In this document: piece by piece, positions 34,180 through 64,000 of the stretch
Position numbering within the stretch: position 1 is the first letter of the stretch
How the letters are laid out: each line of letters begins with the position of its first letter
Assembly (NCBI RefSeq): GCF_006345805.1
Contig: NW_021833026.1
Location: forward strand, 372,001-436,000
Direction: 5' to 3'
DNA length: 64,000 nt
Source: Octopus sinensis
Taxonomy: Eukaryota
Notes under the pieces: model-generated
What the model was told of the DNA's origin: nothing
Database searches by the model: none
Seen by the model: the letters and a program-made list of their open reading frames with translations, nothing else
Position numbers and translations under genes: made by a program

Positions 34180-34390
34180 CAGTGGTTCTCAACGGTGGGC
34201 GATTTATTCCGCCAGGGGGGCGATGTTTGATTGCCAATATTTAAAAAATTAAATTGATAATCTTTGAAATACTGCACTAATCCAAATGAAGATTATGTTA
34301 GGTTACTTTTACATACCAAAGTAAGATGGTTATCCAAGTGTAATTGTCTTGAAAGATTTGTGATATTATTTGATGCTATTGTTGATTTTT
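34180..34390 (+). mobile_element. hAT (Buster/Charlie) end plus transposase fragment
   Basis: cagtggttctcaac terminus preceded by attTAaac (Buster-type target); LLHTKVRWLSKCNCLERF resembles HTEVRWLSRG.VLERF. Confidence 0.6.
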
Positions 34391-37225: not shown

Positions 37226-37794
37226 TTCATCGATCGCAATTGAAACATATTCAAATTTTAAAAAATCAGATTTTAATCGCTCTTTCCAATGCGAGAACAT
37301 TTCTTTGATATGTTCGGCAACTGTATTTCTGGTTAAAGAAATCTCTTTAAACAAATGCGCATTATCAGGACAAATAATTTTGGCTGTTTTCACAAAACAT
37401 TGTTTGATGAAATCATCATCACAATATGATTTTCCATTCATTGCAAGCATTCTGCTGATTTCACAACTTCCAGTAACGGTGATTAACTAGTTGCATATCA
37501 AACAATGTATTTTTGGATCAATCGTTAAATAGAGACGTTCCCATTTTTTAAAAACACTCACTTTTCATTTCAAACACCGTTTTTTAGTTTCAAGAGAAAC
37601 AAGTGACATTGTCAAACAAGATTTACAATAAACTAATTATTTAAAATATGGATCCAAAAATGTGCTCTGTGCACAGATATTTGAAACACCGCACTTGATA
37701 GCAAAACAAGGTCTCAAAAAAAGTAAATAAATAAGGATGGACAGAAAATAATGACGAATAAGTTCAGCTAAGGGCCGCATGTTTCACACCCCTG
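37225..37794 (-). mobile_element. hAT (SPIN/GTF2IRD2-like) 5' end and N-terminal transposase
   Basis: Terminus caggggtgtgaaacatgcggccc followed on the + strand by cttTAact; FIKQCFVKTAKIICP...ISLTRNTVA...SIAIDEST. Confidence 0.78.
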
Positions 37795-37949: not shown

Positions 37950-38800
37950 TACTACTATAGTCAAACATTATTAACGATTCAGTCTGATTTTGCAAAAGTG
38001 GATTTATAACAGTTTGATAAAAAAATCAAGGAAATAATATTGAAAATTATCTCACATACACAAATTCAAACAGGGCTTGGATGGATACAAAAATTTTTAA
38101 AAAGTGGCTAATGAAATGAGAACACGAATTAGATAAGAAAAAATAGAAAGATTTTGACGATTATTGATCGTTTTCCGTCACATAAAATAACATTAACTTT
38201 GAAAAGAGTTGAAGTTTTATTTTTACCCGCGAGATCAACCTCACTTTTGAGCCATTAGAGTCTAGTGACTAGACCAAGGAATCATTAAATGTTAAATGAA
38301 CTTTTAACAACTTAAAGTTTAATCATATTGACAAAATTGGAGCTGGAGTTTATGTTTATTACATTAATGGATTTAATATTTTTCACTTATATTTCATATA
38401 AAAATGTAGAACCAAAATCAATTTTAAACTGTTTCAAGCATAAAAATGGATTCCAAGCAAAATAGATTGTCCAAACATAATTCCAAACGAAATAGAACAA
38501 TTTGATACTTGTATACAAAAATTACAAATTAAAGACCCATTGACTGAGCAGGATTTTATTAAATGGACTTAAAATGACGAATTAATCAAAATGTCTCAAG
38601 ATGATAAATCTGAAAATTTCGAAACAGTTCCTCGCGATGAGGCTATTGATGAAAATTTAATTGAGACCAGCAAAAATAAAAATGGGGATAAACTGAATGT
38701 GACAGACATGGAAACTTTGAACATGTTGGAAAATATTTGTCAAAAACTAAGAAAATCTAGATTAAAAGCTAAAATTACTGATTTTTGTTAAATAAAAATT
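37950..38800 (+). mobile_element. Tigger relic
   Basis: GWIQKF CENP-B remnant, VEVLF(L)PA.STSLLEPL DDE remnant, and acidic tail ending KAKITDFC. Confidence 0.5.
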
Positions 38801-38899
38801 TTTGCATGTGTTCATGAGAAAATAATTCAAAAATTGATAAAAAACCTTCTCAAATCGGCCAAATTCTCGAATTCGACACATTTAGCTCAAAAACCAAAA

Positions 38900-39350
38900 A
38901 TGGCAGATCATCGCCAAAACTTATACACCCGATCAGTACGCCCTCACATCCACTAAAAACTACTGCCTTGTACTCGTCATCAGGACTACTACTTCTGGTC
39001 TTCACACTCCAAATCCAGTCCTACCAACTATCACCACATCACTAAAGCGTGCTTCTTATATAGCTCCCGACACGTTGCCACAGCACTCCTCTTCTCCACC
39101 GGTTGGTTAGCTCGAAAATGTCTGTCCAGGTGTCTCTTTTGCGACCCTACCTGCTCGTCCCTGAAGCAAAATGCTCATTAGCCACAGGCCACACCGTCGT
39201 AGAAAATCCCCACAAATGCATCCGGTAATCTAGGACAATAAACCAAGTGGGAGTGACTCAAAAAAACAGTCCAGACTAAGATCAACTAACTGTCCGACGA
39301 CTCCTATCACAAATATCAAACCAACAACCAATTTATTCGTCAAAAATGCA
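38900..39350 (-). CDS. Small gene or fragment with a PCF11-type C2H2 zinc finger
   Basis: Splicing 25-nt and 22-nt GT-AG introns gives CICGDF...HLDRHFRAN...RELY...DWIW, similar to PCF11 CGMRF...HLDWHYRQN...RRWY...DWIEF. Confidence 0.4.
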
Positions 39351-39460: not shown

Positions 39461-40740
39461 TTAAGCATAAATACCATAAGAGAAATGACTATAACAAGTA
39501 GAACACAAAATACATATTGTAGCAAGAATCAGAAAAATATGCCACTTTCTTTCTGGATATTGAGAGATAACAAAGTAGACTCCAAACGAATAAAAACCGA
39601 CAGAAAGCACAATAATAATTAAAAGCTTCATCCAAAAAAACAATTTTGATCTCGAAGGATAAACTCGCTCGAACAAACCTTCCAACGTTCCCCCATTTTT
39701 ATAAAACATATCAAAAACTTTATCCTACCACAAAAATTACAAAAATACTTTCTCTTCAAAAGAATTATACAAAAACTGTTTTCTTTCTTCCTCCCCTTCA
39801 GGCAATTCACCCATTCTTTCAACTCTGTCAAAATTAGACAATGATCCCAACCGAAAGTGAAACTGCATTTTAAATCTCTTCCCCACGATTATATTATAGA
39901 AAGAAGGAGACTCGCTCCCATCGATACTGCTCATCAAAAATACTCCGTTGATCAAATAATCAACTTAAAATGACATTGATGATATTTACACTTTGGTTTA
40001 AGATATTCAGTCACAAAAAGAAATCCTCGGGGTCGAGGCAGTAGGAGATGTTCATATTGTGGGAGACCTTTATTCTGGGCATATTTTACAGATTCAATCT
40101 GTTTTTCGGGAGTAAATCTGGTCCCTTCCGGCAATAAAATTAGCTAAAATTGTTATGTTTATTGTTGTAACATTCACAGGCGTATAGGAAGGATAGTCGA
40201 CCAAAACAGCAATTCGACTAGCCAAAATGTCTCTGTCGCTCGCCCAGTCTCGAGAAATGAAAATATTGTCTGTCATTCGACATATAAACCCCAACAGCGG
40301 CAGGTATTGAAGGGATTTTTTCATATGGCACTTCATAGTCTATAAATTATATTTACACAAGACAACTCCAAGGGCTCCAAAGTTATCAGCCATGGCTAAA
40401 AAAAGTACAAAATCCGAACTGTATTTGTGGTTTAGAATCAGTAGATTGTGCCCATTATTCAGCACGTGACCCAAATTTCGGTCACCAAAGACCTCAATTT
40501 CGCAAAAAGTGAATGCTTCAATATAAGTGGTCATGCCTTGCAATTTTAATTGTGAATTATACTTGATAGGAAAAGTTCATAAAAGAAATGGAGGACGACT
40601 CTGTACAGTTTGGGGGCAGTGAAGCGCAGTAGTATGAATGAAGCGAGACACAGTAGTATTATTATCGTCCCTGATCCGAGGAAAATCATTGTGAAAATAG
40701 ACATTTTTGAAATATACAATAAATCATTTTTAAAACGCAT
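39461..40740 (-). CDS. 1-acylglycerol-3-phosphate acyltransferase, AGPAT3/4-like
   Basis: NHKYSSD (NHX4D motif), LQYLPLLG...FISRDW, PEGTRFT, KGLPQYEHLLLPRPRGF, N- and C-terminal hydrophobic segments. Confidence 0.85.
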
Positions 40741-41335
40741 TCTTGCGTAATGCACTTAAAATTATATTGATTATTTGAAATTCAAATTTTTAATAACAAA
40801 GGTTTTAAATAATTTTACTCAAATTGTAAAAATAGAATATTAATCGAATATTCGATTAAAATATCAATAAAGACAAAATTCTGGAAGTAGTCCTAACACA
40901 TTATACTAGTCTTATTAACTCATTAATCTAACATAACTGTTAAAAATATCCTTTGAGAATTCACCAAAGCTATTCGCCTTGGATATCTAGATGGTTACAG
41001 GACACCATTGCTAAAAGTCCCCTCTAAACGCACGCGCAAATAGTCATCGGAATTTTTCCCCAGACTTTACATTTGTGGTCGGTGAAAAGTGCTTTCATAT
41101 TTCGGATATCTTAAATAAGAACATTTTGACCTTATTTAGATATTCTTCAATTTTAAATATGCATTATTAGTCATATCCGCATTCTAATTACAGTCTTAAG
41201 AATTAAAGTCAGAATATTAAAGTCTCAGAAAAGTACCGAGAATAACCACTATTAAGTCAAGTAATGTGGTTTGGAAAACAACAAATAAATAATCCTGTAT
41301 TAATAGCATTAAATGTGTTAGAATATTTAATTAGA

Positions 41336-42712
41336 TCACCCAACTACACTTTTGATGGCTTTTGCCAAATACTCAACTCGTGACTCGACAAGACTGGCCA
41401 TGTTGACTCTCCCATTTTGCAAAATATAAACGTGCCACTCCTTCTTCAATCTGTCGATTTGATCCCCTACTATTCACACACAAAAAACAACTCGACAAAG
41501 GCGACATGAAAAAGAATCCCTTCGTAGATTTAATCTGATTCCACACCAATCCCTTCTCCTGGAGGGACAAAAACAAAATTTCCCTGACACGACGGATCCT
41601 CTCCATCATCTCCCTCAACTCGGAAGTCCTGCAATTACCAGGACTCATACCATTCATCGTACAACTCCCCAAACATAGACAATATCAATTTAGCACCGAA
41701 TCGAGGCGGACTGGAATAAGTGGCTCGAATAATGGACTCCACACTGCTTTGAATTCCGCGCTGTCCATCATTCGAAAACACCATCAAACACCCAACCCTC
41801 TCCCCTTCCATGGACTGAGGACACTACCATATAGTCCCAGGTTCTTGGAGAAAGACAGACAGACCAAAAACTCAACTCCCAACTCTGCAAAATATCGGAT
41901 TGACCACGAATCTTCCCACAAACCCGCCCCGAAGCCAAGATAGGCAGAGTCTATGACAGGGACAAGACGTCTCCTCTAAAGAATTAATATGGAAACTGCC
42001 TTCATGAGTTGTCCAATCTGTCTCCATCCGTCCTGGGAGGGGTCGAGCCCACAGGGATTCTGGCAACACCCCTGCAGTACCACCACAGAATTCTCAGGAC
42101 ATTTCTAAGAATATTTTAAAAGGAAACACCTCCAGATCTTCCAAAATGTGTTCCACGGCCAGGTAACCGTCATCCCTTGTGTCCATCCGGTAGTTTTGAC
42201 ACTGAAAACCTGCATCGGAAAATATCAGGTTGTGGGGTGCTGGACATTACTTTGAGAGTTAACCCCATGTTTTAGCAGCAGTGAGGACTGTGGTTCTTCC
42301 ACAGAACTTTGAAAGAAACTTAGCAGCCAGGTGACAGGCTCCAGTGCCTCCCAAGGTTTGGAAAGTCAGGAACTACAGAAATACACAAAAATGGACTACT
42401 TTGAACGAGGAGGCATTTTCTCCAAATACAAGTTTCCCGACGACCTGACTTAGTTGAGGATATCCAGAAATTTGCAAATATGAATGAGTATCTGCTCTGT
42501 CTTGCTCTATCATGTTCTTAGCCTTCTTTACTGCTCTGAGTACATAGACCTTCTCGTTCTCGTCGGTGTATGCTACAGTGAGCATAAATAGTACCTCCCA
42601 CAGAAAGATTCAGTTTTTCGGGGTGGGGATCCTCCATGTATTCTGCATTAAGACCGAATATTGCATCCGGAGGCATGACTTGCAAATCGCATGATAAAAA
42701 ACGTTCGGGCAT
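41336..42712 (-). CDS. GOT1: Aspartate aminotransferase, cytoplasmic type
   Basis: PPDAIFGL...DPHPEKLNLSVGAY, and C-terminal HVYILQNGRVNMASL...VEYLAKAIKSV; micro-introns. Confidence 0.88.
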
Positions 42713-42831
42713 TAGGGACTATTAATAATAATTGACTTTTATTGTATTTAATTAAAAAGAAAATTATTTTATTAAAAAACATATTCAAAATACAATTTTT
42801 TATATAACAAAATAAACTGAAAAACTACCAT

Positions 42832-45800
42832 TTATTTGAAAATAGAATTAGATAAATTAACAAGACGCGTATCCTCACTACCACTACAGAAATTGCAAAA
42901 ATCGTTCATAAGACTCATAGTAAAAGTGCCCTCTGAATTGGGGTCACTAAAGGCTGGACTCGACAAATGAAATGCATTCGTCTCGTGGTTGTACATCAAA
43001 TTCCAACTCCAAATAAAACCCGGAGCCTGTCAATAAATCAAAACACATAACCGTCGCCCCCACAGGAACTGACAACAAGTACAAGTCCATCTTAGAGTCT
43101 TCCGAAATTGGCAGAACCAGCACGTGTCCCGTGATATGCACATAATAACACGGAGGTTCCACTTTACTGACGGGGGTATGACTCAAATCCACAATCCGTT
43201 GGAACCCATAACTAAAAATAACAAAAAACAAGACGATATAAGAATGTTTTGTTGAAGAAAATCTATTTTCCGAATATCTAAAAGTCAGAAATATCATAAC
43301 TACCTCCGGGATTCCCTCCCTCTTCATGGGGATGAACAAAGGAACCCTGAAAGGGTCAATACACGATTCGGTCTTGAGGGGAAATGGATTGCAGGGAATC
43401 GGGGTTAATTTGAACTGACTGTCTTTACACACATCACAACACCGATTGATCTGCCAATCACAAACAGAGTTTACTATGTGCAGAAGATAGTCACCGGAAA
43501 TGGAGAGCCAGTCGAATTCGAACGGAAGAATCGTGTTTTCCGTCAACAAGGAATGTGTGGACATTCGACTGAACTGCAGGGACTTGGATCTGTCGCTTGA
43601 TTCAAAGCAAATCAACGAGTCAGTCACCGAAATGTCTATTTTGGCCACATATTATTAACCCGAGGCTGTTTTCTGCGCAGAATCGACTTCAATCTCAACT
43701 CCGACCGGACAAATGAAGAAATGACTGTACAGAGGACCCGATCTTGTCATACTATAGATCTTCCCAAAAAATTCAAAAACCATCCTTTTGGACCTGATTT
43801 TGAAATCATTCTATAAAGATGAAATCCGTACGCAAAACGATTCCCAACCGCGCCTTGGACACTCCGAATGGCCTTGTTATTCAACAATTCCTAAAAAATA
43901 CTGGCAATGAGAACTTGGAAGATATTAATGCATCTCTGAAAAGTTATTCTGGTGTTTGGTGACTTTAACAGCCATTGGACTGCGTCATAACTTGTGAAAC
44001 AGTCTAAAAGGGGTTCCTGGGTCACTATTGGTGGTAGGAATGGAAAACAGGTCCTTCCATAACTGAAATTAATACTTTGATGATCTCATCGATTTGATGA
44101 CATCGGAGGCCGAGGGAGATGTCTTGAGAATTCCGTGACATTTCTTGCACGTGTTTTCTGTATGGTACTACAAAAATTAATAATGTGAGTGACCTCGGTG
44201 TCTTCACCCACACTGACAAATCCACAAAGAATTTTGAGGATCATGACAATCAGATTATCGTGTCTCGGCACGTCGGGGAGTCCCGGTGAGTAAAACCTTG
44301 ACATGGTCGAAAATATTACCGATTTTTAATTAGATAGGAACATTCGACTGGAATAACCGCAAATCGTGACTTCCAGTACCGGAGTGACTAAGGTCAAGGC
44401 AATTTATCAAAACCTCTCTAAATCCGCTACAACTCGAAATGTCCCTGATAAAATGGTCGAGATAGTTCCACGGAAACACGTCCTGGTGAGGAGTTATAAA
44501 CGTCATCTCCGCTTTCCTGAAAAATTTCATGTCAGTCTGCCGTATCTGGGCCTTACACTCCACGGAAAATTCCTCACATGCTGGTCTGAAAACATTCAAG
44601 GACTCCTACCTTGATTTGTAAATCACGACGTTGATTAAATTGCCCACACGTCGCAGCACGTGGAATGTCAGTCCATCAGAAAGTCGATATTCAGTCTAAA
44701 TTGGTAGGGAAAACACACATTTGAATTTTCGTCAATTTCTGGGGAGTCTTTTGGTCTCTGAACAAGCTGAAAGTCCTAAAATTGAATCTCAGAAAAGAAC
44801 CCTCGACATCCTCTGCAATGACAGTTCCTTCAACAGTAAAAGAGGTGTTCCGTAACAGACGCGGTGTCCAACGCTATTTTGTGTTTTTCAAAAAATGGGA
44901 CCTGACAGAATTGAAAGAAGCAAAATCGAGTTGGTAGTTTATAATGTTGCAATTTGATAAAGAGACTGGCCAATAGTCCGTCGTGGGGGGAAGCAGATGG
45001 GCCATTATAAAGCTTTCGGGCACATCTAATCGCTTTTTGAGTGTAAAACAACTCGATTTAAACGTGGTGATAAAAAACTTGCTCGAATCCGGTCTAAAAA
45101 TGATTATTGGTTGGCAACTCAATTTTCTTTTCGGAAGGACGGTGGGTGATGTGTCGTTGAATTCTGTCGTCTTCGATGTCCTCCATCTAGAAAGGTCAAA
45201 TTCAAATATCACAACCGAAAACATATATTGAAGACTAGTCTTTGGGGAAGAATGTTCAGACTCATCCTCTGATGGGCTTACATTATCTAAAAATGATAAA
45301 AATGATTCACAAAAGTAAAAAATGCTTCTCCAACGCCAATTGCTCACTTCAAACGAATCACTCCAATTTCTGGCGACTTTCATTGGATGTTCCGAACAGT
45401 TGAGGTCTATGACGTATTCAGAAGTGGAGGCAGAAATATTTGTCATTCTGGGAATAGAGGGGGAGTATCGCTGTTCTTGGATATTTGTGGGTGCTGAAAG
45501 ATATGCAAATATCGGATATACGAGTAAACGACTGCATTTCAGCCGAACCACACTTTGGTAGTGAAGAGGAGATAGGACTCCTCTTTTCAGTTTTGGTGGA
45601 ATGACTATCCGAGCGACTTAGGAGCATTCCTTTTTCAAAATATTCAACGAGTCCTAAAAATAATTCAAAAACAACTTTTTTGTTGTGCGTAGTTAATCGG
45701 ATGCTAAAAAAACATAAAAAATCAAAAAAACCAGTTTGTTTGGGCGCCGAAACTCCTTTTTGGGCTTCCGAAGTCCATAAAACTTTGACACATAAAACCT

Positions 45801-47346
45801 ACACAAATTTAGAAAAAAACTAAAAACGAAGGAGTAATCCACATTGGAGTATAAAACAAATATCCATTTTTTTCTGCATCAAAAAACTAGAATCAACACA
45901 CAAAAGTAACCATGAAAAGAGGGCAAGCATGTCCGGGATAGTAGTCCAGAAAAACCATGTCGATGCATGTTCCTGAAATACATTTTGACTTTATAACCAA
46001 GAATGAGTGCCTTCTGCATTGCGATGGAAGCAAATTTCTTGGAAACCTCAAAATAGCCCGCCCCGGCGGTAATGAAAAGCACGACTTGTCCAAGTCTTGC
46101 AAAGCTCCGGTCGTTGTAATACTTGTCGAAGGCTATATGGCTTGTTGTCAGTTTAAAATACCGTCCAAAGAAATGTTGAGAGTCTCCAACAGATTTCCCT
46201 GGGCAGCAACGGAAAAGGTGGATTCCGGCATTTTATATTCTCCGTGGATTGCTCGAACCGACTCCTCGTATGTTTCGTAAGAGGTTCTCAGAGTAGTCAT
46301 TGCCGATTTCCAATTCGAGAAGGACGATGACCGCAAAATAAGCCTCGGGGTCAGAACTATCACAACACACCAGTATACATCCTCATAGAATGTTCCGTGC
46401 TCATCCACGCTGATACATGAACGGACTTGTTCAGGGAAGTCATCTTTACTTGTTTATTCATAGAATAGTACCAAGAGAAGTTGCGTTGTATACAATGCGA
46501 GAAAAATATATAATATTGACAGTGTGGTTGCACTCGTGCTTCCTCCACTCGTCAAATATTTTTTTGAGGACGCCCTCCACTGCCTTGTCGTAGTAATATT
46601 CCCCATTTCGGTCAAAAGTCCACATTTCGCAGCTCATTTGTATGTAGATATACACAACTGCACTTTTTGAGCGGAAATTGACCTTTAATGAATATTTTGA
46701 ATTTACCAACCTGGGAAGAGTGTTTTATAATTCCAAATTTGATTGGTTTTTTATTGTAGAACATGGCCTCTACCGAGCCTCTATGAATAAAAAAGTAGAC
46801 TCACGTCCAACAAGCCACTTTTCTTGAAGTCCCGACGTAAAGAAGGCATCCGACCTGTGAATTGCTAAGAATAATAAAATACCAATTCTAGTTGCCACGC
46901 TCTCAAGTCACTTCTGCTCAAATATTGTTTTTTAAATGCAATGTCCAAATAATCTGCCTCGTAAGGCTGCAAATTGTTTTTTAATAAAAATAAACCTCAG
47001 CAGAGGACTGTTTTATTTCAGCGAGTTCTCCGCCTCTTAAACCGAAAATAGAAACGAGATCCGGGCTTAGAATTATGTTGTCTGTTATTATTTGAGATTA
47101 GAGACAAAAACCGTGTAAATTGTCGAGCCACGAATCTTTGTTTATTTGCACTGGAAAAGACCTAATTTGAATTTTTTAAAATACTGCGTCTTGTAGGTCA
47201 GTTCTAAAATATTTCCAGTCGAGAACCAGTTTTTGAATGAGGAATCAAGAAAGAAATGAGTTTCGAAAAAACATGTATTTTCTGTTTTTTAAATAATTTT
47301 TACCTGGAAAGCGGTAGGTATATGATTTTATTTTAACAACAACCAT
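42832..47346 (-). CDS. DEPDC5: GATOR1 complex subunit DEPDC5/IML1
   Basis: FRSKSAVVYIYIQMSCEMWTFD, FYEDVY, AAQGNLLETLNIS, FITAGAGYFEV; C-terminal LMNDFCNFC...DTRLV resembles LLKDFTDFC..DNRLV; first intron 22 nt. Confidence 0.9.
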
Positions 47347-47732: not shown

Positions 47733-49560
47733 CAGAGGTTTCCAAGCTTTTCTTTACACGCCTCCCTTAGAAAAAATGTGCAATCCTGGGTCTCCCTTTA
47801 TATTCCATAATCTAATACAATTATTAATTTATCAAAAACAATTTTTTAAAACAAAAAGTTAGTGAGATATTTTTTCCCATCTTGGCGCAAGGTTTTTGAA
47901 ATCTTGCTGTCATTGAAAAGAGTGCTATTATTAGCTGATTAGTCACTACTAAACGAGTTCGATATTTAGATTTCATTGCAGCTAGTGCAGAAAATGTAGT
48001 TTCGCATAAATATGAGGTAGCAAATGGCAACAAAACTTTCATTGCTTTATTCGACAAAATTTCATATTCCGTACTTACATTCAACCGAAAATAAATTAGC
48101 GGTTCTCTCTCAAATTTTTGTTTCAATAATGTATCACATAACAATTCTATCAATTTTTCTTTTTCAAAAGTTGTCAATGCAAATTCGTTATCTTTTTCAT
48201 CAATAAATGGATTCTGTATCCATTCAAACGTTTTACAGTCGAGATCTTAAAAATAATGAGTAAAATGCTTCAACAAACAATCCAAATGTCCAGCAAATAT
48301 GTCTTTGCTTCAATTTTCACTGTGACGCAGAAGGTATTTAAAAGTGGAAACATGTCATAGATATTTTTTGTATATTTGATTTCCATAATACCAATTTTTT
48401 CATAAATGCTTTTATTTTGTCCTTTTGAGCGAATAAATGTAGTTGTGGTCTCTGCATTGATTTATTCAATGTACTCAATTTCCCAAAAATGTCAACTAAA
48501 TAGGCAAATTTGACAATAAAGTCATCATCCCTGAACAATTTTGCATCTTCAATATCATTTTCATTATGAAAATCTCCAACTTGATCTTTGAGTTCAAACA
48601 CCCTTCAAATCACTTTTGCACGAGATAGCCAGCGCACCTCACAATAGTATAAAAGCAATGTATATTTTGAATCCATATCTTCACACAGCTTTGCAAAAAG
48701 CTTAGCTTTTAAAGGAATGTGTTTTATGTAGTTTATAACTTTTGTAATTTGCGCAAAAATATCGTTCAGTTCTGGGCTCATATTTTTTGAGAAAAGTGCT
48801 GATCTGCGCAGCATGCAGTGCGTCCAGATTATTTCTGGTGCTCTGTTTTTTACAAGAGCTTGAAGACCAGATTTATGTCCTGACATTTACTGTGCTCCGT
48901 CTGTACAGAGTTCAACACAATTGATCCATTATATGTTGTTTTCTTCTAAAAAAGTATCAATTATATTAAAAATTTCATTGGCTGTGGTCCTTCCAGGAAA
49001 TGGTTTGCAGAATAATAGATCTTCTATTATTGTACTTTCTGCGCATATCTGACATATGCAATTAAATGTGCATTTTTATTTATGTCAGCTCCCTGATCAA
49101 CTTGTATAGCAAATTTACAGTATGTCATCAATTCTTCTAGCGACTGTGTTATCAGCTGTACTTGTTTTGCATAGGATTCGCCAAACATTGCTTCAACCAT
49201 ATCGATAGCTGCTGACAAAACTAGAGTTTTCCGATATTGTGCGGTTTCTTACATTTTGCAATCCTGTAGAAACTTTGTACGATGCTACAAAGCATTTAAG
49301 AGACAGAAACAAGTTTTTTTTAAAAATTTCGTTTGGTTATCATACTCTTCTAATTTTCTTTTAAAAAATTCTTCGGACTTATGAACATATTCAGAATGTG
49401 CGTTTCAAAATGTCTTCTAAATTTGCATGGCCTCATACTATCTGCTGCATGTGTTTTGAGCAGAAGCAAACAGAGGGGTTTTTTCAAGGAATCAACAATA
49501 AATGTTTCTGATATGCATTTTCGCAACTCCCTTGACACAAATCAGCGCCTCCCTAGGGAG
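47733..49560 (-). mobile_element. hAT Buster (ZBED5/SCAND3-like) transposon, frameshifted
   Basis: Terminus cagaggtttccaagc; BED finger remnant KPLCL...MRPCKFRRHFETH; IIWTHCML; LLYYCEVRWLSRAKV; KVLLPFATSYLCETTFSAL. Second TIR not found. Confidence 0.87.
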
Positions 49561-51039: not shown

Positions 51040-54000
51040 TTTTTTTTTTTTTTTTTTTTTTTTTCATAAAAGAAATGTTATTATTCGAAAGAGAAGAGAT
51101 TGATTTGAGAAATCAATTGAGGAAGCCCGCTGCCTGTATGGAAAGCGAGTTCCCTCGGAGTATGGCTATTCCGATCCTTTGTCTTAGCCATACTCCTTCA
51201 CGAGGATCATTCTTCTTTGTGGCGAGCATTCTTCCGAGTTCGCGCAAGAACTCGGCAGTCGCTGGGCCAACTGCTCCTGATGACTCAGCCGCCGCAACAG
51301 GGGTGAATCTGTAGCGGTCCCCGAGGAAGGAATATTTTTTGGTTTTAAGGTTTTCCGCGATTGAGGCAGCTGCTCCAGGTGTCTGAACCGATTTAAGGAG
51401 ATTCGTGCTTGAGTAAGTATCGACGCAAGTTGCGTCCCAGACCAAAGATCGTCCGGAGTTGAAAGGGAAAAGAGTCATCCCGTCAGGTCTCTTTCCATCA
51501 CCTCGATCGAGACCCACTGGTTCAAGCTGTGCTGGGAAGCCTGCAGCCTTCAGAGCTCTGACGATCACGTCGTTCAGAGCGGCGTGACGTGGTCCTCTTC
51601 CGGCGGATCTCCTGCAGGATAGCGGGTGCAATCCCTTCGCATCGACCGTTTTCCCGCAGCGGCATCGGTGCTCCTGGCAAACGTCTAGTCCAAGTCTTTG
51701 TCCGATTCCAATCCTCAAAGAATCGTCGTCCAAAAAAGTCCCGAGATTTGGGCAAGGATTGCACCAAGCCATGCTCCGCTCCCTCCACTTGAGGCTGACA
51801 CCAGGCAAGCAAGACGATGTTGATTTGCTTCTTTTTTAAGCCCTTCTGAAATTTTGGAGCAGACAATGTTATCCCAGTTCCTTTGTTTCGTTGTGTCTTC
51901 GGGGATTTTGAGTCCTGACCCGTTCCAATCCCGGCAAGCTTCATCAAATGACTCATTCCAGCGAAGTCCAATAGTGTGACGAAGGACTTGCCGTGTCAAA
52001 TGGTTGCAGCTTGAGAGAGACGAAAGATATGCCGGGTACGCGACCTCCAGCGCCGATCTTAGACCGACACCCCCAAATCCAGAGGGAAGCTTACATTGCT
52101 TCCAACCGAGTTCGTCGAAGCGGACGTTGATTAGTGACTCAACAGTTTGTTTGAGAGATTTGTCTATCGAAAGTAGACTGTCGTAATGTTCGTGGCAGGG
52201 TGAACTTCGCAGTAGGTATAAAAGCTTGGGTAGTCCGATGTTGTTTCTCATCAGGAAGAAGGATGTGTGAGAGTCGAGGCATGACAATCTTTTTGCGAGG
52301 CGAGATAATTCTTCATTTTTAGAAAGTAGATGGTTCCTGAGTTCGTCTTCACTGAGTGGACATCCAAGGAAATATAGTTTATCAACTGGCACAGTCGGGA
52401 TCCCGGGAAGCAGTTCGTTGAAAAACTCCTTGATAGAGAGAAAGTCGGTGTTTGAGTATGAGACATTTATTAACTCTGATTTGTTAATATTGATGTCCAA
52501 TCCCAAGTGTTTTAATGCGGGAAGTGCTTGACGTAAAGAGTTGTATGTTTCCTCGAATGATCCTCCAATTGTGGCATCGTCGAGATACCAGAGATTTAGT
52601 TTGTGCGTCAATTGATCTCACAACATCATCAATTGTCAGGGCAAATAAGAGGGGTCCGAGCGGATCTCCCTGCTGGACACCAGTTTTTGATTTAATGATT
52701 TCATCATCAAAAACCAGACGTATCTTCTCCGTATGACAATTTAACAAGAGGGAAAAGCATGGGACCCTCTTCCAACACGTTTCCATAATGGAGTCTCTTC
52801 TGAGAGAATTGAATGCATTGGTTATGTCCAATTTGATTCCAATGCATTCGTTTGCAGTATTCTTCTGTGTGAAGAAACGCCTTGCTGCATGAACCGCTGC
52901 CTCACATCCGTTCTGGATACTAACACCCATTTGTTCTGGGAAGAACTCCGCACCGAGTGGGCGGCTCACGAGGGTCGAAGCAATCTTCGCTGCGAGTCTT
53001 CTGAAATAGTTTCCGACCGCAATGGGGCGGATTCCTCCGTTGGGTTTTTTGAACGCGAGTAGCCTTGCGGAGAAGAGCAATTCTCTGGCATACTCCGGGA
53101 TGTCGCCATTCACCATTTTCCTTATTAGGTCCGTGATCGATTTAACAAGACAGCGTCCTGCTTCCGAGGTGTAGGTGACGTTAGGTCCTTGATATGGCCG
53201 GGGCGTAACCCATCCAAGCCTCCGCTGCTGCTAGCGGCAAAGAAGCGATTCCGCGCCGCACTTCTGATTCGGTAATCATAATCTCTTGGGTTCCTTCAGG
53301 ATTCGAGAACTTTACATAATCACTCGGTGCACTTGGGTGCTTCTGAATTAAGGTATTCAGGACCTCGGGGGTGCTAGACAGCACGGTGTCATCGGACGTG
53401 ATAACCCGTAGGGCTGCCCGCACATCGCCCTCCAGAAGTTTCCGATTCACTCGCTCCTTCAGTTTGTTGGGGGCATCTTTGGTGAATGCTCCTCTGGTTT
53501 TGACCGCATTGGCAATAAGTGGCTGTTCAAGTATTGCGTGTATGCTATGACTGCCGTAATTCAATATTCTTCCTTTCAGTTCCCGGTTAAGTTTAGCCGG
53601 GGGTTTGTTTCTTTACTCTGGTTATCAGATTCCGTTGTAGGTGTTCCGAGTGCAACAGGTGCGAAGCATATAAGTTTTAGCCAGGATTCCCAGCTGTCAG
53701 AGGACAGTGCGTTGTCAATGAGGTCTGAAAGGCACGTTGCTGCGGCAATACGTGCTCCTTTTGGGATTTTTACTGGGATTTTCCTGGCTTTCCGGAGGTT
53801 CGAGATCTTCAAGAGAATGTGGTCAGTATGTGGTGATGTAAGTTTGGCTGAGCTGTTGTTTCCCGCCTGGGGACCTCGTTTCCAATACAGGGGGGCACTG
53901 CCAGCTTGACAGCGTCTCGGCGCAGGCTTTGCTCATTTTTATGCAGCCCAATGGGCGAATGATTCACATGGCGTGCAGTTAATTCCAAATTCCTGATATT

Positions 54001-54134
54001 CGACTGCCCACAAAAGAGACATGCCCGAGTTGTCCTCAGTGGCTTTGTTCCTCGTACTTCGTCTTCGCTTCGTTCTTTATTTTCCATCTGAGGTTTCCGT
54101 AATCACACCACAGCACACCAACGGAAGTTTTAAA
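51040..54134 (-). mobile_element. Full-length CRE-clade non-LTR retrotransposon (copy F)
   Basis: About 47-nt 5' UTR; N-terminal C/H finger; RT (GGIRPIAVG, DITNAFN, QQGDPLGP, WYLDD); CRCG..H...C finger; KRPDG REL endonuclease; 25-A tail (51040-51064); candidate 9-bp TSD ttgcttttt (51036 and 54135). The ORF is broken by several 1-2 nt indels. Confidence 0.95.
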
Positions 54135-55266: not shown

Positions 55267-57346
55267 GCAATAGAGTTGCGTCACTAACTCAACCGAAAAG
55301 TAACAGAAACGGTAAAAGACCCAAACAAAAGCTGGGATATATTAGAAAAACTTATTCACAAAGCTGCAACGGAAACCATTGGAACGACTGCATTCAGAAA
55401 CCACTCAAACCCATTGAATCCAAATGTTGCCGAAATGGCAACAAAACAAAAAGCCATCCAACTGAAAATTGAAAACACCAACGACAAGGAGGCAAAGGAA
55501 AAACTCAAAAGAGAACGTAGGAAAATATCGAGAACATCAAGAAGGAAAATCTTAAATACGTGAAAGCTTTATTAAACTCTCGAATATCAGAAGTTGAAGA
55601 CTTAAAGGATGGTGCGCAAATGTACGCAGCCATCAGACTACTACGCCGACGACAACAGAAAACAAAACTGGTTGTGCACGATGAACATGGGAAAACAATT
55701 GGAAACCCAATCGAAATGGTAAATACAATCGCCGACCACTTCGAAATACTATTCAATGGCAGGGCCGATGCTCTCGATGAGGGTGAAGAACGTTATCTAA
55801 ACAACAAAATAACACACCTTGAAGTTTTGAAGGCTATAAAAAATTAAAAAACAACCGTGCGGCGGGTCCAGACAACATCAACGGTGAATTGATAAAGTAC
55901 TCCCCAATGGAGATCTCAACTATAATCACAAATCTCCTGAACGAGATGTTCCATGGAAATACCATACCGCCTATTGGGAAAGGAACGCTAATTCCTCTCC
56001 AAAAACCCAACAAGCCGCAAGGTCCTCTTAACAACATTCGCCCAATCATACTCTTGAACACAATAAGGAAAATCTTCTCGCTCGTAACACTGGAACGTAT
56101 TAAGGACCCTGTTAATGAATATCTGTCGGCTAGCCAAAGTGGATTCAGGCCTGGGCGATCAACTGCAGATGTAGTATGGGGACATAGATGGATCTGTGCC
56201 ATATCTCAGAAATTTAAAATGGCGACCACAATATTGGGCATTGATATGAGCAGGGCATTTGATACAATCCGCAGAGACAAGCTAATGGAGATCCTCAAAA
56301 CTATTCTTGACAATGACTCGATCAGAATGGTTCGAGCACTACTTATAGACACCGAGTTAACGGTGAAGATCGGACCCGTACAATCAAGATCTTTCAAAAC
56401 AAGCATTGGAACGCCCCAAGGTGATTCAATATCACCTGTACTATTCATTGTCTATCTTGAAGCGGCACTAAGAGATCTGAGAAAACTAGTGAAGTCTACT
56501 TCAATAACTGAAGTGATATATGCCGACGATGTAGACTTTTTGTCTCATGATAAGTCGACTCTCGAAGAACTGCTGAACATTGCTCCTCAGGCACTGGAAA
56601 AATGGTTCTTAAAAGTGAACATAGAAAAAACCGAATATGTAACAATCAACCGGGAGGCAAATAGAACAGACGAAAAATGGCGAAACTCGAAAAAAGTTGG
56701 AACTCTTTTAGGAGATAGTGAAGACATTATGAGGAGAAAGATGCTATCGACTGTTGCACTTAACAAACTGCGGACCACTTGGCTACGAAACCGCGAGGTT
56801 GGAACGGCCTTACGTGCCAAATTATACAATGCTTTTATTAAACCCATACTTTTGTACAACGGAGGAACATGGGGAATATCTGAGTCTGAATCAAAATCTC
56901 TTGATGCATTCCATAGAAGACAGTTAAGAATTCTTATTGGCATCAACTGGCCAAAGAAAATCAAGAACTCCACCCTATACAATATCTGCAACAGCAGACC
57001 CGTCAGTGTGGACATTACCGAAGCACGTTGGCGCCTATTGGGCCACATTCTAAGACTCGACCAGGATGTTTATGCTAACTGGGCAATGGAATCATATTAC
57101 GCAAAGGACGAAAGATCTGCGTCCCGAGGACGCCCACGAAATACATTACCTATTGTAATCTCAAAAGAACTACAACGCGTTAAAAGACAACTGAAAAATG
57201 GAGACGACCTAGATACTCTCAGGAGTATAGCATACAACCGCACATCATGGAAAATTATGACCGAAAAGATAGTCTCATATGTGGCACATGTGGGAACTTA
57301 ATTAGTTTAAATTACATTATGTTCCTATGACAGTGCTAATAATAAT
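55267..57346 (+). mobile_element. RTE LINE 3' part (linker, reverse transcriptase, TAA tail)
   Basis: AAGPDNI, PLQKPNKP..NIRPIILL, QSGFRPGRST, GIDMSRAFD, GTPQGDSISP, YADD; stop at 57301; taataataat tail at 57337-57346. Confidence 0.93.
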
Positions 57347-57404: not shown

Positions 57405-58455
57405 ATGTTTTCGTTGCGCCATATTGGAGCTAAATTTACCCCCAGCAGAAGGACGTTCATTGGTTTAGAAATCTAATTACTTGCAGAATCAGAAAACTAC
57501 GGACCAATCTCTCCTTGGCATGATATTCCTTTATACTCCGACAACTCATCCCCCCTCATAAATATGGTAGTAGAAATCCCTCGTTGGACAAATGCAAAAA
57601 TGGAAGTCTCAACCCCAAATCCCCTAAAATAGATCGACAGAACAAGCCCACTCAATCCAATCAAGCAAGACTCTAAAAAAGGCAAACTCCGCTTCGTCCA
57701 CAACATTTTTCCCTATCACGGGTACATCTGGAATTACGGAGCCATCCCCCAAACCTGGGAAGACCCGTTTGTGGCCCATCCTGACACGGATTGTGTGGGC
57801 GACAACGACCCCGTCGATATTTGTGAGATTGGAAGTCAAGTACGGTCTCCACTCATCCAAAGATCCTCGATTCCGGTCATGTTTGTACTGTCAAAGTCCT
57901 CGGAGTCCTCTGTTTGGTGGACCAGGGCGAGACCGACTGGAAGGTCATCGCTATTTCCACTGCCGACCCCCTTGCCCCTCAACTAAATGGTTTTTAATGG
58001 CAAAAACATGATTAGACATTGAGGACGTTGAGAAATATATGCCGGGACTTCTTTCTGTATGTTTTTTTGTGGGATTTTTAAGGCCACGCGAGATTGGTTT
58101 CGAGATTATAAAAAACCGGACAATAAGCCGTCCAACGAGTTCGGTTTGAACGGAGAATATCGCGGATTTGTTTGTTTTTGTGTTTATTGTAGGAATATGC
58201 GATGGATGTGGTCAGACAGAGTCACGAGTCGTGGAGGAGGTTGATGGAGACTCCCTCATTGAAGGGGGACAATTCGTTGATTAATGTCACATTGGATAAT
58301 CCGGAGTCGGTGGTGGATGTGAAACGATTTTTGGATAATGTAGTTTTGGGTTTTATGAGCAGGCGAATGGGAGGGTGTGTCTGACTGAGAGGGCTGAGTC
58401 GGGTTGGTTTTGGGGGTCATTTTTAGGTGATAATACGTGGTATTTTGTCGAGTAA
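57405..58455 (+). CDS. Soluble inorganic pyrophosphatase (family I, PPA1/PPA2-like)
   Basis: [79 protein letters not shown]; introns of 23-27 nt; 3' end inferred. Confidence 0.93.
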
Positions 58456-59305
58456 TTTCTGCTTTTAACTTTCGGTTTGGTTTTTTTTATTTTGTGGCTT
58501 TTTGTGTATTTTGGGTCTATTTATTTATTGATTAATCTGTGAATTAGGCATCTATTAAATTGTTAATTAGTTTTAATGATTTTATTTTTAACAATCTTTG
58601 TTAATGAATAAGTTAATTAACTATTTTATAAGTTTGGCTGATCATGGGATTAAGTTCTTCATTCGAATCTCACTAATTAAAGTAATTAGTTACTCATATG
58701 CCATTGTGAAAGATTTGTGTCATCATCCATGATTTCACAAATTATTTTGTAAAGAAAACACGTTGGACAATAATATTTGTTAAAAAAACTCATCTTCATT
58801 GTGAGACTTTCAAACACGGGAGTATGCGGAATAAATCTGACAGAATCGAAAGGCATTTTAATATTTTTAAAGTGACAAATCCAATTTATAATAACGAAAC
58901 AATTTATGATAATTATGTATATTTAATTAGCAGCAGAGGATAGGATGGAATGGCAATTCCCACGCAAGATGGCTATTGATATGCGTTTTTAAAGTTCTAC
59001 GTTGCATTACTAAACGCTGCGTGAAACGCAATTTTTTTAGGTTTTGAATGATGACACATCCCTATTAGGATTTGGATAATGTGCCACATTATATTAAATG
59101 TCTTTTAATTCAAAATCGTAAAAATTCTCAAATCCACGATATATTCCAAGGTAGGAATGATAACCAAATTGATTTAAAACAGAAGTCTTATCTAAGGTCT
59201 CTTTTTAACATGTTATCATACATACTGTATGCATGTAACATACAGGAATATTCTGGTCGTCTAATGGGCAAGGACAATAAATAATTTCATTTCACTCGTT
59301 AATAC

Positions 59306-62300
59306 TCACTTCTTTTTAAAAAATTTTTTCTTTTTTTTATTTCCATCGAGTCCAAGAAGCCTTCTCGCCTTGTCTTCTTGCTTTTGGGGATGAGAAACAC
59401 GGGGACTCCCCTTTCTGTTGATTTTGAGTCGTTGTTTGATAGCCTATAGATTTAAGAAAAAATTAAGTCACATGAGTCACAATCATCTTCTGATAGTCAT
59501 TCTTGACAGACATAAACAGATCTAACCAACTGAACATTCGATCGTGGTATTCCAATGTTGGAATTGTGATGGAAAAGTTGCTAAATTCCAAAAACTTGTT
59601 ATCCAAACTCTGCAAAATTATCGAGACAAAACAACCTTAAAACTAATTAGAAGGGGAACTTGAGTGATCTTGACGTACACAAACTGCATGTTGGAGGCTG
59701 CCCTGTCCTGGGGTGAGTGGGGAGGGTACTTTCATGATAGTCACGTCGTCCCGATATTCGGAGGACCCACTCTCCTTACTCCGCTTATTCTTTATGGATA
59801 TCCCTACAAATGAACTCATCGACACACCAGATGACTGACTGAAGAAGAATTGAACCACCAACAAGTAAAAGTCGTAGGTGAGGTAGGCGGATGTGGGGGC
59901 TACATTGATCTCCAAATGTTCCTTCATGGATATTCCCCCAACTGGGACTCCCTCCCGACAGTATATCCGCACTGAGGGACTATGGGCAGATGGGTTCTCC
60001 TCGTCCGTAGGAATAATCACGTCCTTCAGAATAAGTGAGGACACAACTCTGTAAAACGAGTTGGGATGCAGATCCGACACCTTAAACCAACCCAAGTGAA
60101 GTAAATGTGACTTGGTGTCGTCTGCAGACCCAATTTTGTTATATCTAATCATGCCAGGACAGAAAATGACAGAAAGTTGCTGATAATGACATTGAGTTGA
60201 CTGTCGTCATGAGTGATAGTCCACTCTGCGTGCTTGAAACATATCTCGAGGGTGTGAAGTGGGGCAGTGAGGTCTGGGAGAGTCAGTGAGTGTGCTAGCA
60301 AGTGATGTCTCCTCTTATTATAGCAACTAAGAATACAACAAGGAAGACTGATACCACAACATATGTGACAATTCTTGACTTGTGCTGTACAACTCCTTTC
60401 GAGTAGATTTGATTCGATCCCTCAGTCTGGTGAGTAGTTCACTCCGCCCGCCGTGCTCACGAACCAGAAAGTAATGCTCTCTCTCCAGTTTCCTCCACTC
60501 CCCTGCCAACTCTCTGCACTTGTCAATACAAACAGACCTGAGGACGTTCTTCAGTTCGAATATACGATTAAGGTGTTCCGGAAGTGTGCACAAGTCGAGT
60601 TGGAGTCTCATTTCCTGCAGTCTGTCCAACGACCTTTTACGTTCGGGATCAAAGTAGAGAAGGAGGTTGTTCACAATGTCAATAATCACCGAATATTGCC
60701 ATTTGTTAGTCGATATTGACAGGTCGTGGTGAAGCATTGTGAATGTCTCCAGACTGTCCTCGTCCTCGGAGGGAGGCTGGCCATCACTCACCAACAATTC
60801 CTCGATGGCCGCGTAGGACGAGTAGAATATGTCACACCGACACCTCGACACTATTCTCTCCAGATTGCCCCCTTCGTTCGCATTGGCAAAATACTGCATA
60901 ATATGGCCCACTCACCTCCATTGAGTCGATAGTCCCAATCCAACTTATTTTCGACCTCAGACCGTTGTTCTTCCACACCAATCCGTGCTCACGTTGGAAG
61001 AACTGGGCTTTCTTAGCCACAGCCATAATGAAGCCCGATTGGACCACCAAACTCAACTGGACATTCCTAAATTCGACTGCACTCAGTCAGTCCACTCACC
61101 CAAACAATTCCGACTTGTCACATCATTACTTCCACACGACTTTGGCCCTGACAGATCATCCACCAGACATGTCTGTGTCTACCAATCAACACATTCCATC
61201 ACCACGTCTCCAGTCACGTAAAACTTGTTTTCCACGTCGGCCACCAGTCGCTCCAACAAGTCCGGAGTCCACTCATCTTGCTCGACCAACTCCTCTCTGG
61301 ATTTGACCACCTTCTGTTCGTGTCGTTCAATGCAGGAGATTATCCCCGAAAGTAAATTACGGCGGAGAATGACCCCTCGTTGGTAGTGATTCATCAACTC
61401 ATAAAATACGGCTCTGTTCTCGTTAGTCCACCTCACCACAGTGTCCTTCACTATTACATTGTGTTTGTGCTGAATGTCAATATAACTACATGCCTGGTAG
61501 GTTGACTCGATCTCCGTGGAGGCCGTGGGGGGAGACAATCTGGTCTCGATTGGGGAGTGGTAATATCGCAGTCTAACATGTAACCAAAAACACTCACGAG
61601 TCAAACTTAATCAGAAAATTGGCTTCCTCACTTTTATTACCGAACAAGTCAACGTTGACCCTCTCCTGTATGAAATGAAAAGACTTGATTTTCCACACAG
61701 TGACTGGTCGTCTGAGTACATTCCCTTGGAGGGGGAGGACAGAGTAGTCCAGGGAACTGTCCAAGGACACGGAACCCCCCTTTAGTTGTACTCCATGCAC
61801 CATTTCCCCCGTCATCCAGTATTCAATCACAAAACTGTCCAGATTCATAGCAATGTTAAACTCTCTACTCATAGTGGAATATATCACCTGAAATGGCGAG
61901 AAAGTTGTATTCTTTTGTAGAATGGTCGTCCAAAGAGAGGACCCAGGCGGATCGGACGGGTGAGTTGTTGGATTGTGGTCTACAGGTGGTCAAGTGAAGA
62001 CAACAATAATGTCGAATATCCAATTAATCGACCCCGAATAGAATTTGAGAGACGAGAGAGAAACATTACTCGAAATACTCAACTTGACATCCATCCCACT
62101 CGACCTGAAAGCCCGGAATGTGTCGTGTGTCTGCATCACTCAAATATTCTCACCAAAACATCCGCGACGTACTCCCGGTGGATTGGAATCACCGTGAAAT
62201 GAGAGTAAGCATCACCAGGACATATCCAGGAGACTTTGGCCCTACCACTCAGCCAGAAAACACCACTCAAAGCAGGCATTCGGAATATGCACCAGTCGAT

Positions 62301-64000
62301 AATCGTCATAACTCGAAGCAGTCTTGCAGTTTATTTGCAAGTCTCCGTTCAACACAAACTTCCCTGCCATGAACTGATGAGAGTAACCACATGTGTTCTC
62401 AAACACGAGGGACTCCCAGGACCACTCGATGAACTCAGTCGAGTTGTATGGGTCATTCGTAAGGCGGTACATCAACGATAACTTTAGTCGGGCTCTCCAA
62501 TTTCCGTGGAGAACGTAGCGGAACATGTCGAACCAACTCAACTTGGGACTGCAATCTCGACTGGGCGACGTTATCAAATCAAGGCAGTGGAAAAATTGGC
62601 AGAGCGAAGGCTCGATGCTGGGTCCGTAGGCCACTCTCACTTGCCCCGACTCTACCATCCACGTATACAAATACTCGAATCGAGGTCGTAGAAATACTTG
62701 AGGGGGCACAGTGACTTTCGAATCTCGAAATCCCCGAATGGAATGACGACTTGGTCTACCAGTAGGCACACTAATCTACTCAAATATGTCCCCGTCAGTT
62801 CTGCCCCTCCCAACAGTCCCCAAAATCGACAATTATTCCAGACTATAAGAGGCACGGAATAGTCCCGGAGAGCAGTCCTCATTTCGTCAAACTCAAAAAT
62901 GACATAACGACAAAAGAGAGTGCTGAATGATGTCTCCCCACCGTCAAAACTACTCCTCACTCACACAATCCACCATTCAGGCTCCACTCGCTTCATAAAC
63001 CCCAGAATATTGTCTTCCCCAAAAACGGAGGGGTCTGACAGGGCTTTGAGGGAGACCCCCTCCAGACTGATCCGACAGAGGGTTTTGATCCCTTCTTGTT
63101 GCCGACGGTGAATCCCCACCCGCTCAATGTACGCGGAGGAATTCCTTTGCTCCACTGTGGCGTACAATTCATCCATTTTCTCGACTTTTATGACACACAA
63201 CACTCACTCGACATGCTTGCCCCCATTTCCTGCAGTCGTTTGTCCAGAATTACTGATCTCTGCACCTTTTCCACAAACTCATCACTCAGTAACTGCAATA
63301 TGACTTATTCCCTACTCTGAAGTTGCTCAATATCCTGTTCTCGAATGGGTCGTCCTCGAATACCACAGAAAAGTGCTGGGAATGATAAGGACTCGCACAT
63401 TTATGCTGATATTCAAGTCACTCATCAACGTCGGGGCTGAATCGGAGACATTTCTCAACTTTTTGTGGACAATCCTCATTATTTTAAAGGCGTCCTTCAA
63501 CTGAACACTCACAATAATAACTACCGCCACAAAACAGGCATCAAAGTTGTAATTAAATGGAAAAACCACGTGAAATGACCCGAACGTGTAATCTCTGACA
63601 ATATGACACCCAAGAATAACATTGTGTGGTTTATAGCCTGTTCAATCCCCTCAAATGAACTGCGGACACCAATTCCAGCTTCCCCAGCTGACTTGGTTAT
63701 GTCAATTTGCTACAATCACAACAACAGCCCACCTGAAGAGTGAATATGTCATGGCCATCAAAAGCAATCACCAACTCGTCGGTTATTTCCGCATTAACCA
63801 CGTCGGGAGTCCTTTTTATGACCAAGTCCGTGAGGGAAAAGACCACTCGGTGATTATCTGAGCATGTCCACTACACTCAACCTGGGAGAGTCATTGCCCA
63901 ATGTGAGTGAACACACACTTTGACTGACCATGTAGTATTACTGGGGGTTGTCCTCCCCTTCAGTCTATCCACCACTGGTTTTAGATCAGTGAGGACATTA
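59306..64000 (-). CDS. BLTP2: Bridge-like lipid transfer protein 2 (KIAA0100/hobbit/FMP27), 3' part; runs off the window
   Basis: GGNLERIVSRCRCDIFY, HDLSISTNKWQYSVIIDIVNNLLL, PVGGISMKEHLEINVAP, C-terminal EDKARRLLGL...KKK*. Confidence 0.87.

Follow-up and report, generated by a model that had tools for sequence, protein, structure and literature searches.

G-rich 3' gene ends on the sense strand in a compact 64-kb genomic window carrying an inorganic pyrophosphatase gene

Introduction

In almost all unicellular fungi, genes have a coding strand with a bias to C at the 5' end and to G at the 3' end, as reported by McLean and Tirosh in 2011 (PMC3315797). This composite skew is present at fourfold-degenerate sites, reaches into the untranslated regions (UTRs) and shifts amino-acid usage, and the authors stated that other organisms, higher eukaryotes among them, lack it (PMC3315797). 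Its cause was left open between phase-specific mutational regimes of RNA polymerase II (Pol II) and an avoidance of C linked to the supply of cytidine triphosphate (CTP) (PMC3315797). Herein, we analysed a stretch of 64,000 nucleotides (nt), hereafter the window, from the Octopus sinensis assembly GCF_006345805.1 (contig NW_021833026.1, positions 372,001 to 436,000 of the forward strand; all coordinates below are those of the window). An earlier reading of its letters, the original prediction, had claimed that genes flip from C/A-rich 5' halves to G/T-rich 3' halves, with the inorganic pyrophosphatase (PPA) gene at 57405-58455 (+) as the leading example. We found the G enrichment of sense-strand 3' ends to be a genuine, strong and general feature of the window, and the pattern to be narrower than a flip between the 5' and 3' halves. 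The feature is the same phenomenon as the opposite gene-end guanine-cytosine (GC) skews of fungi and is already known in kind; the original prediction had called such a flip unusual, but the same pattern had been published for unicellular fungi.

The genes of the window share with the fungal skew a 3' G bias that is seen at fourfold sites, extends into the 3' flank or UTR, shifts amino-acid usage and affects many but not all genes. In both cases the gene body and the 5' end are neutral to C-biased, and in both there is no known cause. The differences are several. The host here is plausibly an animal, and single genes reach skews of -0.4 to +0.7, a much larger amplitude than in fungi. The bias is also found here in tiny introns, which serve as an independent neutral read-out. 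Furthermore, T rises with G in the window, whereas the fungal AT skew is flat along genes, and the C bias of the 5' end or promoter is here weak or absent on average.

In mammals, transcription-associated asymmetry is an excess of G+T on the coding strand that extends over the transcription unit and peaks close to the 5' end. The bias in the window has the same direction, with G+T over C+A on the sense strand at neutral sites, and likewise depends on the orientation of transcription, but it is confined to the last ~400 nt. The human terminal GC skew with its 3' R-loops, which was proposed to aid termination, shares with the window a co-oriented positive 3' skew and a gene-dense setting (Ginno et al. 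2013, PMC3787257). However, the human peaks centre on the transcript end, often past the poly(A) signal, whereas here the block lies within the coding sequence and fades after the stop codon; human genes are also G-rich at their 5' ends, whereas here the 5' ends are neutral or C-rich (PMC3787257). Finally, the replication skews of bacteria, human N-domains and yeast show a similar reverse-complement-symmetric sawtooth of GC and TA skew (PMC3459929). With jumps of ~9% in yeast, human and bacteria, these skews are nevertheless ~10 times smaller, are independent of gene orientation and extend over tens of kilobases or more (PMC3459929).

Materials and methods

Gene strands were set by four Pfam scans of concatenated open reading frames (ORFs) of at least 50 amino acids. 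The scans placed the FHA-domain (PPP1R8-like), STAR-domain and pyrophosphatase genes on the plus strand, and the EF-hand (EFCAB2-like), kelch, acyltransferase, aminotransferase (GOT1-like), DEPDC5 and Hobbit/BLTP2-like genes on the minus strand. Gene structures were obtained with a spliced-ORF dynamic programme that used a two-class codon and intron model (codon tables, intron length and splice-site weights), and 12 host genes and 6-8 transposon ORFs were modelled in this way. When introns of up to 90 nt were allowed, genes became fused, and such loci were modelled region by region. Three other approaches were dropped: a length-only spliced-ORF finder, which returned wrong strands and fused neighbouring genes; a heuristic codon model, which was too weak; and length histograms of candidate introns, which were too noisy. 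The STAR-domain gene (~25.0-26.4 kb, +) was only partly modelled and was excluded from the silent-site counts. The counts for the acyltransferase gene use the model 39461-40534; an upstream ATG at 40689, used in an earlier model, is also possible. The remaining ORF-poor stretches of the window were examined and yielded no further convincing genes.

For the metagene, the sense-strand GC skew of the 12 host genes was aligned on stop or start codons. Blocks of strong skew were sought by scanning all 64 kb in 240-nt windows at a threshold of |z|>=3.5.

Results

The metagene aligned on stop codons had a body skew between -0.08 and +0.09. The values then ran through +0.17, +0.29, +0.37 and +0.34 over the four 100-nt bins nearest the stop codon, with +0.13 in the flank. 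From the body to the 3' end, the fraction of G increased from 0.20 to 0.28 and that of C decreased from 0.22 to 0.13. The peak was located 100-300 nt 5' of the stop codon, and the skew dropped in the AT-rich flank. Within 150 nt of 3' flank, G still exceeded C (259/204, p=0.012) and T exceeded A (778/559, p=2e-9). The other end of the genes behaved differently: in the metagene aligned on start codons, the GC skew was ~0 over the first 400 nt, where only A exceeded T, and the 5' flank was neutral (G/C 180/170). The TA skew of the metagene was -0.16 over the initial 100 nt of the genes and +0.10 over the final 100 nt.

The same trend was evident in individual genes. The skew increased along 11 of the 12 host genes, with rho of 0.56-1.0 in all nine genes of up to 1.4 kb, and a co-oriented, positive, 3'-terminal skew was found in 10 of the 12. 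The six transposon ORFs compared were flat. The block scan returned ~20 separate blocks with |z|>=3.5, where an estimate from the binomial tail gives fewer than one expected; 13 of them were sense-G-rich blocks at gene 3' ends, two lay inside the Hobbit-like gene, and three were sense-C-rich at 5' ends (PPA, the unnamed gene 23272-24181 and the spacer upstream of EFCAB2). A clear 5' C excess, and with it a real flip, was seen in only three genes, namely PPA, PPP1R8 and the gene 23272-24181. The 3' part of the predicted flip was thus borne out by the 13 blocks, whereas a general 5' C excess was not, the mean skew of the first 400 nt being ~0.

The pyrophosphatase gene (57405-58455, +) has eight or nine exons and introns of 23-27 nt; its predicted exon-intron structure was upheld, and Pfam confirmed the family. 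Divided into six equal bins, its sense-strand GC skew was -0.21, -0.37, +0.04, +0.06, +0.36 and +0.61. The base counts changed from 71 C/31 G at 57481-57720 to 26 C/89 G at 58201-58440 (Fisher p=3e-12), a run from -0.39 to +0.55 that gives an amplitude of ~0.9 within ~1 kb. The introns were 10 C/2 G at 57606-57632 and 0 C/6 G at 58170-58192. All ten hand counts of the original prediction, including these four, proved exact. In the block scan, PPA had a 5' C-rich segment at 57463-57782 (+; peak 30 G/72 C, z=-4.2), which is one of just three segments in the 64 kb that are clearly C-rich at a 5' end, and a 3' G/T-rich block at 57997-58651 (+; peak 89 G/25 C, z=+6.0), which extends ~200 nt beyond the stop codon. 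This block is among the strongest, and PPA is convergent with its downstream neighbour across a spacer of 850 nt.

The bias also reached the protein. In this one protein, the C-terminal ~50 residues leaned toward amino acids with G-rich codons and scored +0.40/+0.59 above 60 homologues on a codon G-minus-C scale, and a positional trend in the amino-acid G/C score was absent from the 60 homologues. A search for complementarity between the 5' and 3' parts of PPA gave weak matches only (~70%).

We then compared the skew among classes of sites. In the last 300 nt, it was +0.32/+0.45 at fourfold sites and +0.59/+0.56 in intron interiors, compared with -0.16 to -0.18 (about -0.17) and +0.02 to -0.29 (about -0.1), respectively, at 450-1500 nt from the stop codon. 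The codon positions in the last 300 nt gave +0.41/+0.52 (position 3), +0.48/+0.38 (position 1) and +0.18/-0.01 (position 2), with positions 1 and 2 shifting less. When silent sites were pooled, the last 400 nt differed from the rest with an odds ratio of 2.29 (p=1.9e-12). Silent sites in the first 400 nt (-0.07 to -0.32) were like the body baseline of the shorter genes, and in most genes the silent sites of the body have a weakly C-rich baseline.

Introns behaved in the same way. G exceeded C in 16 of the 18 introns within 300 nt of the stop codon but in 38 of the 99 introns elsewhere (p=2e-5), and the last intron contained at most two C's in nine of the ten intron-bearing genes of up to 1.4 kb. 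Introns near the stop codon were poorer than the others in C (.06 against.18) and A (.23 against.27), and richer in G (.23 against.12) and T (.48 against.43); their TA skew was +0.33/+0.40 against ~+0.2. At fourfold sites near the stop codon, the fraction of C was 0.12. The shift on the sense strand is one from C+A to G+T. Since the skew persists at fourfold-degenerate and intronic sites of the 12 host genes and is strongest there, protein composition is not its cause; on this point the original prediction, which had held that amino-acid choice does not explain the skew, was right. These results establish a bias that is tied to the 3' end and follows the orientation of the gene, that holds irrespective of coding constraint and that transposon ORFs lack.

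Tests for G clustering, G-runs and R-loop-initiation motifs found no enrichment beyond composition. A canonical G-quadruplex motif (four runs of G3 or longer) was found on neither strand in the 64 kb.

The position of the switch is best seen in DEPDC5 (42832-47346, -), a gene of 4.5 kb. Its body has a skew of ~0 that fluctuates without a gene-long ramp, and the G excess is restricted to the last ~400-450 nt. In the last 400 nt (42832-43231, -), the skew over all sites is weak (+0.17) but clear at silent sites, which number 23 G/7 C there and 165/200 elsewhere in the gene. The switch therefore does not sit midway between AT-rich spacers. In genes of ~1 kb, the ramp begins ~400-500 nt 5' of the stop codon, which by coincidence is near the middle of the gene. 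DEPDC5 had been predicted on the plus strand; Pfam places the IML1 N-terminal domain near 46.5 kb and the C-terminal domain near 43 kb, so the gene is on the minus strand and the two DEPDC5 windows that had been counted were swapped between 3' and 5'. This error is harmless to the conclusion because a sense strand that begins C-rich and finishes G-rich gives the same pattern after reverse complementation. For the same reason, a model based on transcription and one centred on the spacers (replication or a bidirectional promoter) cannot be told apart by the sign of the skew; they differ only in how strong the two ends are relative to each other and in where the switch lies.

The spacer at 42713-42831 between the DEPDC5 stop codon and the start codon of the GOT1-like gene, which are in tandem, measures 119 nt with ~20% GC, and a 3' UTR, a poly(A) site, a promoter and a 5' UTR must all fit into it. 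DEPDC5 and GOT1 are the tightest tandem pair of the window and have one of its weakest blocks.

Sense-G-rich blocks were found at the 3' ends of the following further genes. On the minus strand they belong to the EFCAB2-like EF-hand gene (8186-8722; block 8162-8565), the kelch-repeat gene (18018-19040; block 17866-18416, peak 91 C/20 G on the plus strand), the unnamed gene 23272-24181 (block 23109-23741, peak 78 C/14 G on the plus strand), the acyltransferase gene (39461-40534; block 39533-39994, peak 64 C/15 G on the plus strand) and the GOT1-like aspartate aminotransferase gene (41336-42712; block 41316-41980). The gene 23272-24181 also has a 5' segment that is C-rich on the sense strand (23770-24027, -) and represents a second full flip like that of PPA. 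On the plus strand, the PPP1R8-like FHA-domain gene (~8984-10000) carries a block at 9575-10162 with a peak of 70 G/12 C (z=+6.4). Its likely last intron (9825-9903, +) is 79 nt long, three times the usual length, and contains a tandem duplication of ~35 nt (aaatatttgtt.aatatggaaatt..aat). The spacer between the divergent EFCAB2-like and PPP1R8-like genes (8690-8930) has 33 G/10 C on the plus strand; it is accordingly C-rich as the upstream region of the minus-strand gene and G-rich as that of the plus-strand gene.

Further blocks lie elsewhere in the window. Two lie over short unnamed genes on the minus strand, at 2944-3460 (gene 2944-3476) and at 38781-39248 (gene 38850-39221). A third, at 36517-36924 (-), covers the 3' end of the gene 36678-37450, which from its sequence is possibly transposase-derived, a reading that Pfam did not support. 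The block at 33321-33605 (+) follows the modelled stop codon of a large AT-rich gene of 3.5 kb (29683-33211) and may mark either its true 3' end or a separate small gene; the true 3' end of this gene is uncertain, and it counts among the exceptions. The blocks at 34318-34557 (+) and 35773-36032 (-) have strong skew and no convincing gene model, and may be the 3' ends of missed genes. The long Hobbit/BLTP2-like gene is an exception to the rule, with two internal sense-G-rich blocks at 60781-61364 and 62746-63358 (both -; z up to 5.2) that adjoin no AT-rich spacer.

The window has a G+C content of 36.0%, an intron-length peak at 22-26 nt and many remnants of LINE-like, Tc1, hAT and pogo-like transposons. 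The genome of Dicyema japonicum has 36.7% GC, 49% repeats and very short introns (PMC6736024), and the introns of myxobolid myxozoans are equally short (PMC13644364). The features of the window fit D. japonicum, and an animal (dicyemid) origin is plausible, though not proven. In a homologue search of 5.8 billion proteins, the closest relatives of the pyrophosphatase protein were fungal, with 50-62% identity (best 62%); the search gave no self match, and no protein of the source organism was found in the collection. A 247-amino-acid DEPDC5 exon used as query had no match in the protein search, nor did an exact look-up of one transposon ORF.

Besides the protein-coding host genes, the window contains a tRNA-Ser(TGA) gene at 12262-12343 (+) and a tRNA-Ala(AGC) gene at 15839-15910 (-). 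Three LINE-like reverse-transcriptase ORFs were identified at 13737-15277 (-), 51113-54087 (-) and 55907-57301 (+), and gene-end skew was present in none of them; the last of these stops 104 nt 5' of the pyrophosphatase start codon. Remnants of DNA transposons (Tc1/mariner, hAT and pogo-like) are located at 21590-22263 (-), 47824-48886 (-) and ~11000-12100 (+). The G+A-rich block at 11716-12105 is, from its sequence, apparently the acidic C-terminal tail of a pogo-like transposase (no Pfam match) rather than the 3' end of a host gene.

Discussion

We consider that the bias is most likely caused, with a probability of roughly 0.55, by a mainly mutational, transcription-linked and 3'-anchored process that acts strand-asymmetrically on the non-template strand. 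Along some 300-450 nt that end at the stop codon, and to a lesser degree for 100-200 nt past it, the sense strand loses C and A and gains G and T. The shift is present in every class of sites, is largest where constraint is lowest (introns and fourfold sites) and is strong enough to alter the amino-acid usage of the C-terminus. An excess of C to T and A to G changes on the sense strand would produce such a shift and is classically left by the hydrolytic deamination of single-stranded DNA, and the non-template strand may be exposed for longer where Pol II slows before termination, in paused bubbles or R-loops. The resulting G-richness could stabilise RNA:DNA hybrids further, which would make the process self-reinforcing. 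Given that the G's are not clustered beyond composition, a diffuse pressure fits better than selected motifs.

Several points weigh against this explanation. Our reading that C changed to T and A to G is drawn from composition, and the net change resembles a replacement of C by G at approximately constant GC content, for which selection on the skew is equally possible. The skew peaks 5' of the stop codon and declines in the AT-rich flank, where termination is expected; McLean and Tirosh raised the same objection concerning peak position for fungi (PMC3315797). The Hobbit/BLTP2-like gene has no G-rich block at its 3' end (59306), yet it has the two internal ones. All results come from a single 64-kb window with ~12 host genes. 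In addition, the gene models were built in this analysis and are approximate, while the raw-sequence skew profiles are independent of them. A mutational footprint and a selected function are mutually compatible. It is possible, though less likely than not, that most genes carry a 3' zone of 300-450 nt in which pausing coupled to termination, or R-loops, keep the non-template strand chronically single-stranded, that the ensuing bias is strong enough to reshape introns, silent sites and protein C-termini, and that this bias may have been co-opted as a terminator enabling spacers of ~120 bp.

We weighed this mutational explanation against others that place the cause in selection. If the co-oriented, G-rich and C-poor 3' block were a selected terminator or pause element, one of the two explanations in the original prediction, it would form R-loops, slow Pol II and permit termination within spacers of 100-250 bp. 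This would suit the 3'-terminal, positive and co-oriented skew of 10 of the 12 genes and an extremely compact genome, in which the start codon of GOT1 follows the DEPDC5 stop codon after 119 nt. The human terminal GC skew is likewise found preferentially where tandem genes lie close together, and it forms R-loops (PMC3787257), and the exchange of C for G at constant GC content looks as though the skew itself were targeted. However, the G's show no clustering beyond composition and no G3+ quadruplex motif exists in the window, and the block peaks 5' of the stop codon and decays in the flank. The weakness of the block in the tightest tandem pair, DEPDC5-GOT1, compared with the strength of that in the convergent PPA with its 850-nt spacer, is also contrary to such a role, as is the Hobbit-like gene without a 3' block, and the sample is very small; we regard a selected terminator as unlikely. 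Selection could also act at the level of RNA or of nucleotide pools, either by avoidance of C at the 3' end under CTP limitation, a hypothesis published for fungi (PMC3315797), or in favour of weakly structured G/U-rich 3' regions of mRNA. The low C near the stop codon (0.06 in introns, 0.12 at fourfold sites) and a bias that lies within the transcribed region and is weaker after it would agree with it. Introns are nevertheless biased at least as much as exons, which makes selection on mature mRNA unlikely, and PPA lacks specific 5'-3' complementarity, so we think this cause improbable. A protein-level cause, in which N- and C-terminal regions need different amino acids, could appeal to the shift at codon positions 1 and 2. 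It is refuted by the intron and fourfold-site data, where the shift is largest; moreover, the shift continues into the 3' flank, and the PPA homologues are without a positional trend in their amino-acid G/C score.

The remaining explanations are centred on the spacers, and both draw on the reverse-complement symmetry of the pattern. Promoter-proximal transcription could make a gene's own non-template strand C/A-rich, while divergent antisense transcription from the downstream neighbour would make the 3' end of the upstream gene G/T-rich. Full flips do occur in PPA, PPP1R8 and the gene 23272-24181, plants, fungi and invertebrates are known to have a C bias directly 3' of the start site (PMC555766, PMC3315797), and a tandem gene lies downstream of each of the acyltransferase, GOT1 and DEPDC5 genes. 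However, the mean 5' effect is approximately nil, the 3' effect is strong and the 5' flanks are neutral. Furthermore, the PPA block is among the strongest even though the neighbour is convergent and no promoter is known between the two, and there is little probability that promoters account for the bias. The other explanation in the original prediction was replication origins in nearly every AT-rich spacer, giving kilobase-sized replicons with C/A-rich leading strands. It had correctly stated that leading strands are A+C-rich in yeast (PMC3459929), and every flipping gene indeed passes from C-rich to G-rich on the plus strand whatever its orientation, with a sharp reversal in the spacers. Such origins would, however, have to fire in nearly every spacer in nearly every cell cycle. 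The amplitude of ~0.9 within 1 kb also contrasts with the ~9% jumps of known replication skews (PMC3459929), the 3' effect far exceeds the 5' effect beside neutral 5' flanks, transposon ORFs are flat, and the G excess of DEPDC5 occupies the last ~400-450 nt instead of starting midway. We therefore consider replication a highly improbable cause.

The skew at yeast gene ends has been known since 2011 without an accepted cause, and here it appears with very large amplitude in what is plausibly an animal genome. If the reading of a chronically single-stranded 3' zone is true, the "opposite gene-end skew" of yeast would here have its first example from an animal, far stronger than any other, and it would offer a system in which mutation can be separated from selection intron by intron. 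The dozens of 23-26-nt introns per locus are built-in neutral reporters, with which mutational causes (single-strand exposure, R-loops) could be tested against adaptive ones (termination, C-avoidance). The bias has practical consequences as well. It misleads gene finders, as codon-trained models ended before the true 3' end in at least two genes (acyltransferase and PPP1R8), and it distorts codon usage and C-terminal protein sequence, which is relevant to the phylogenetics of these long-branch parasites.

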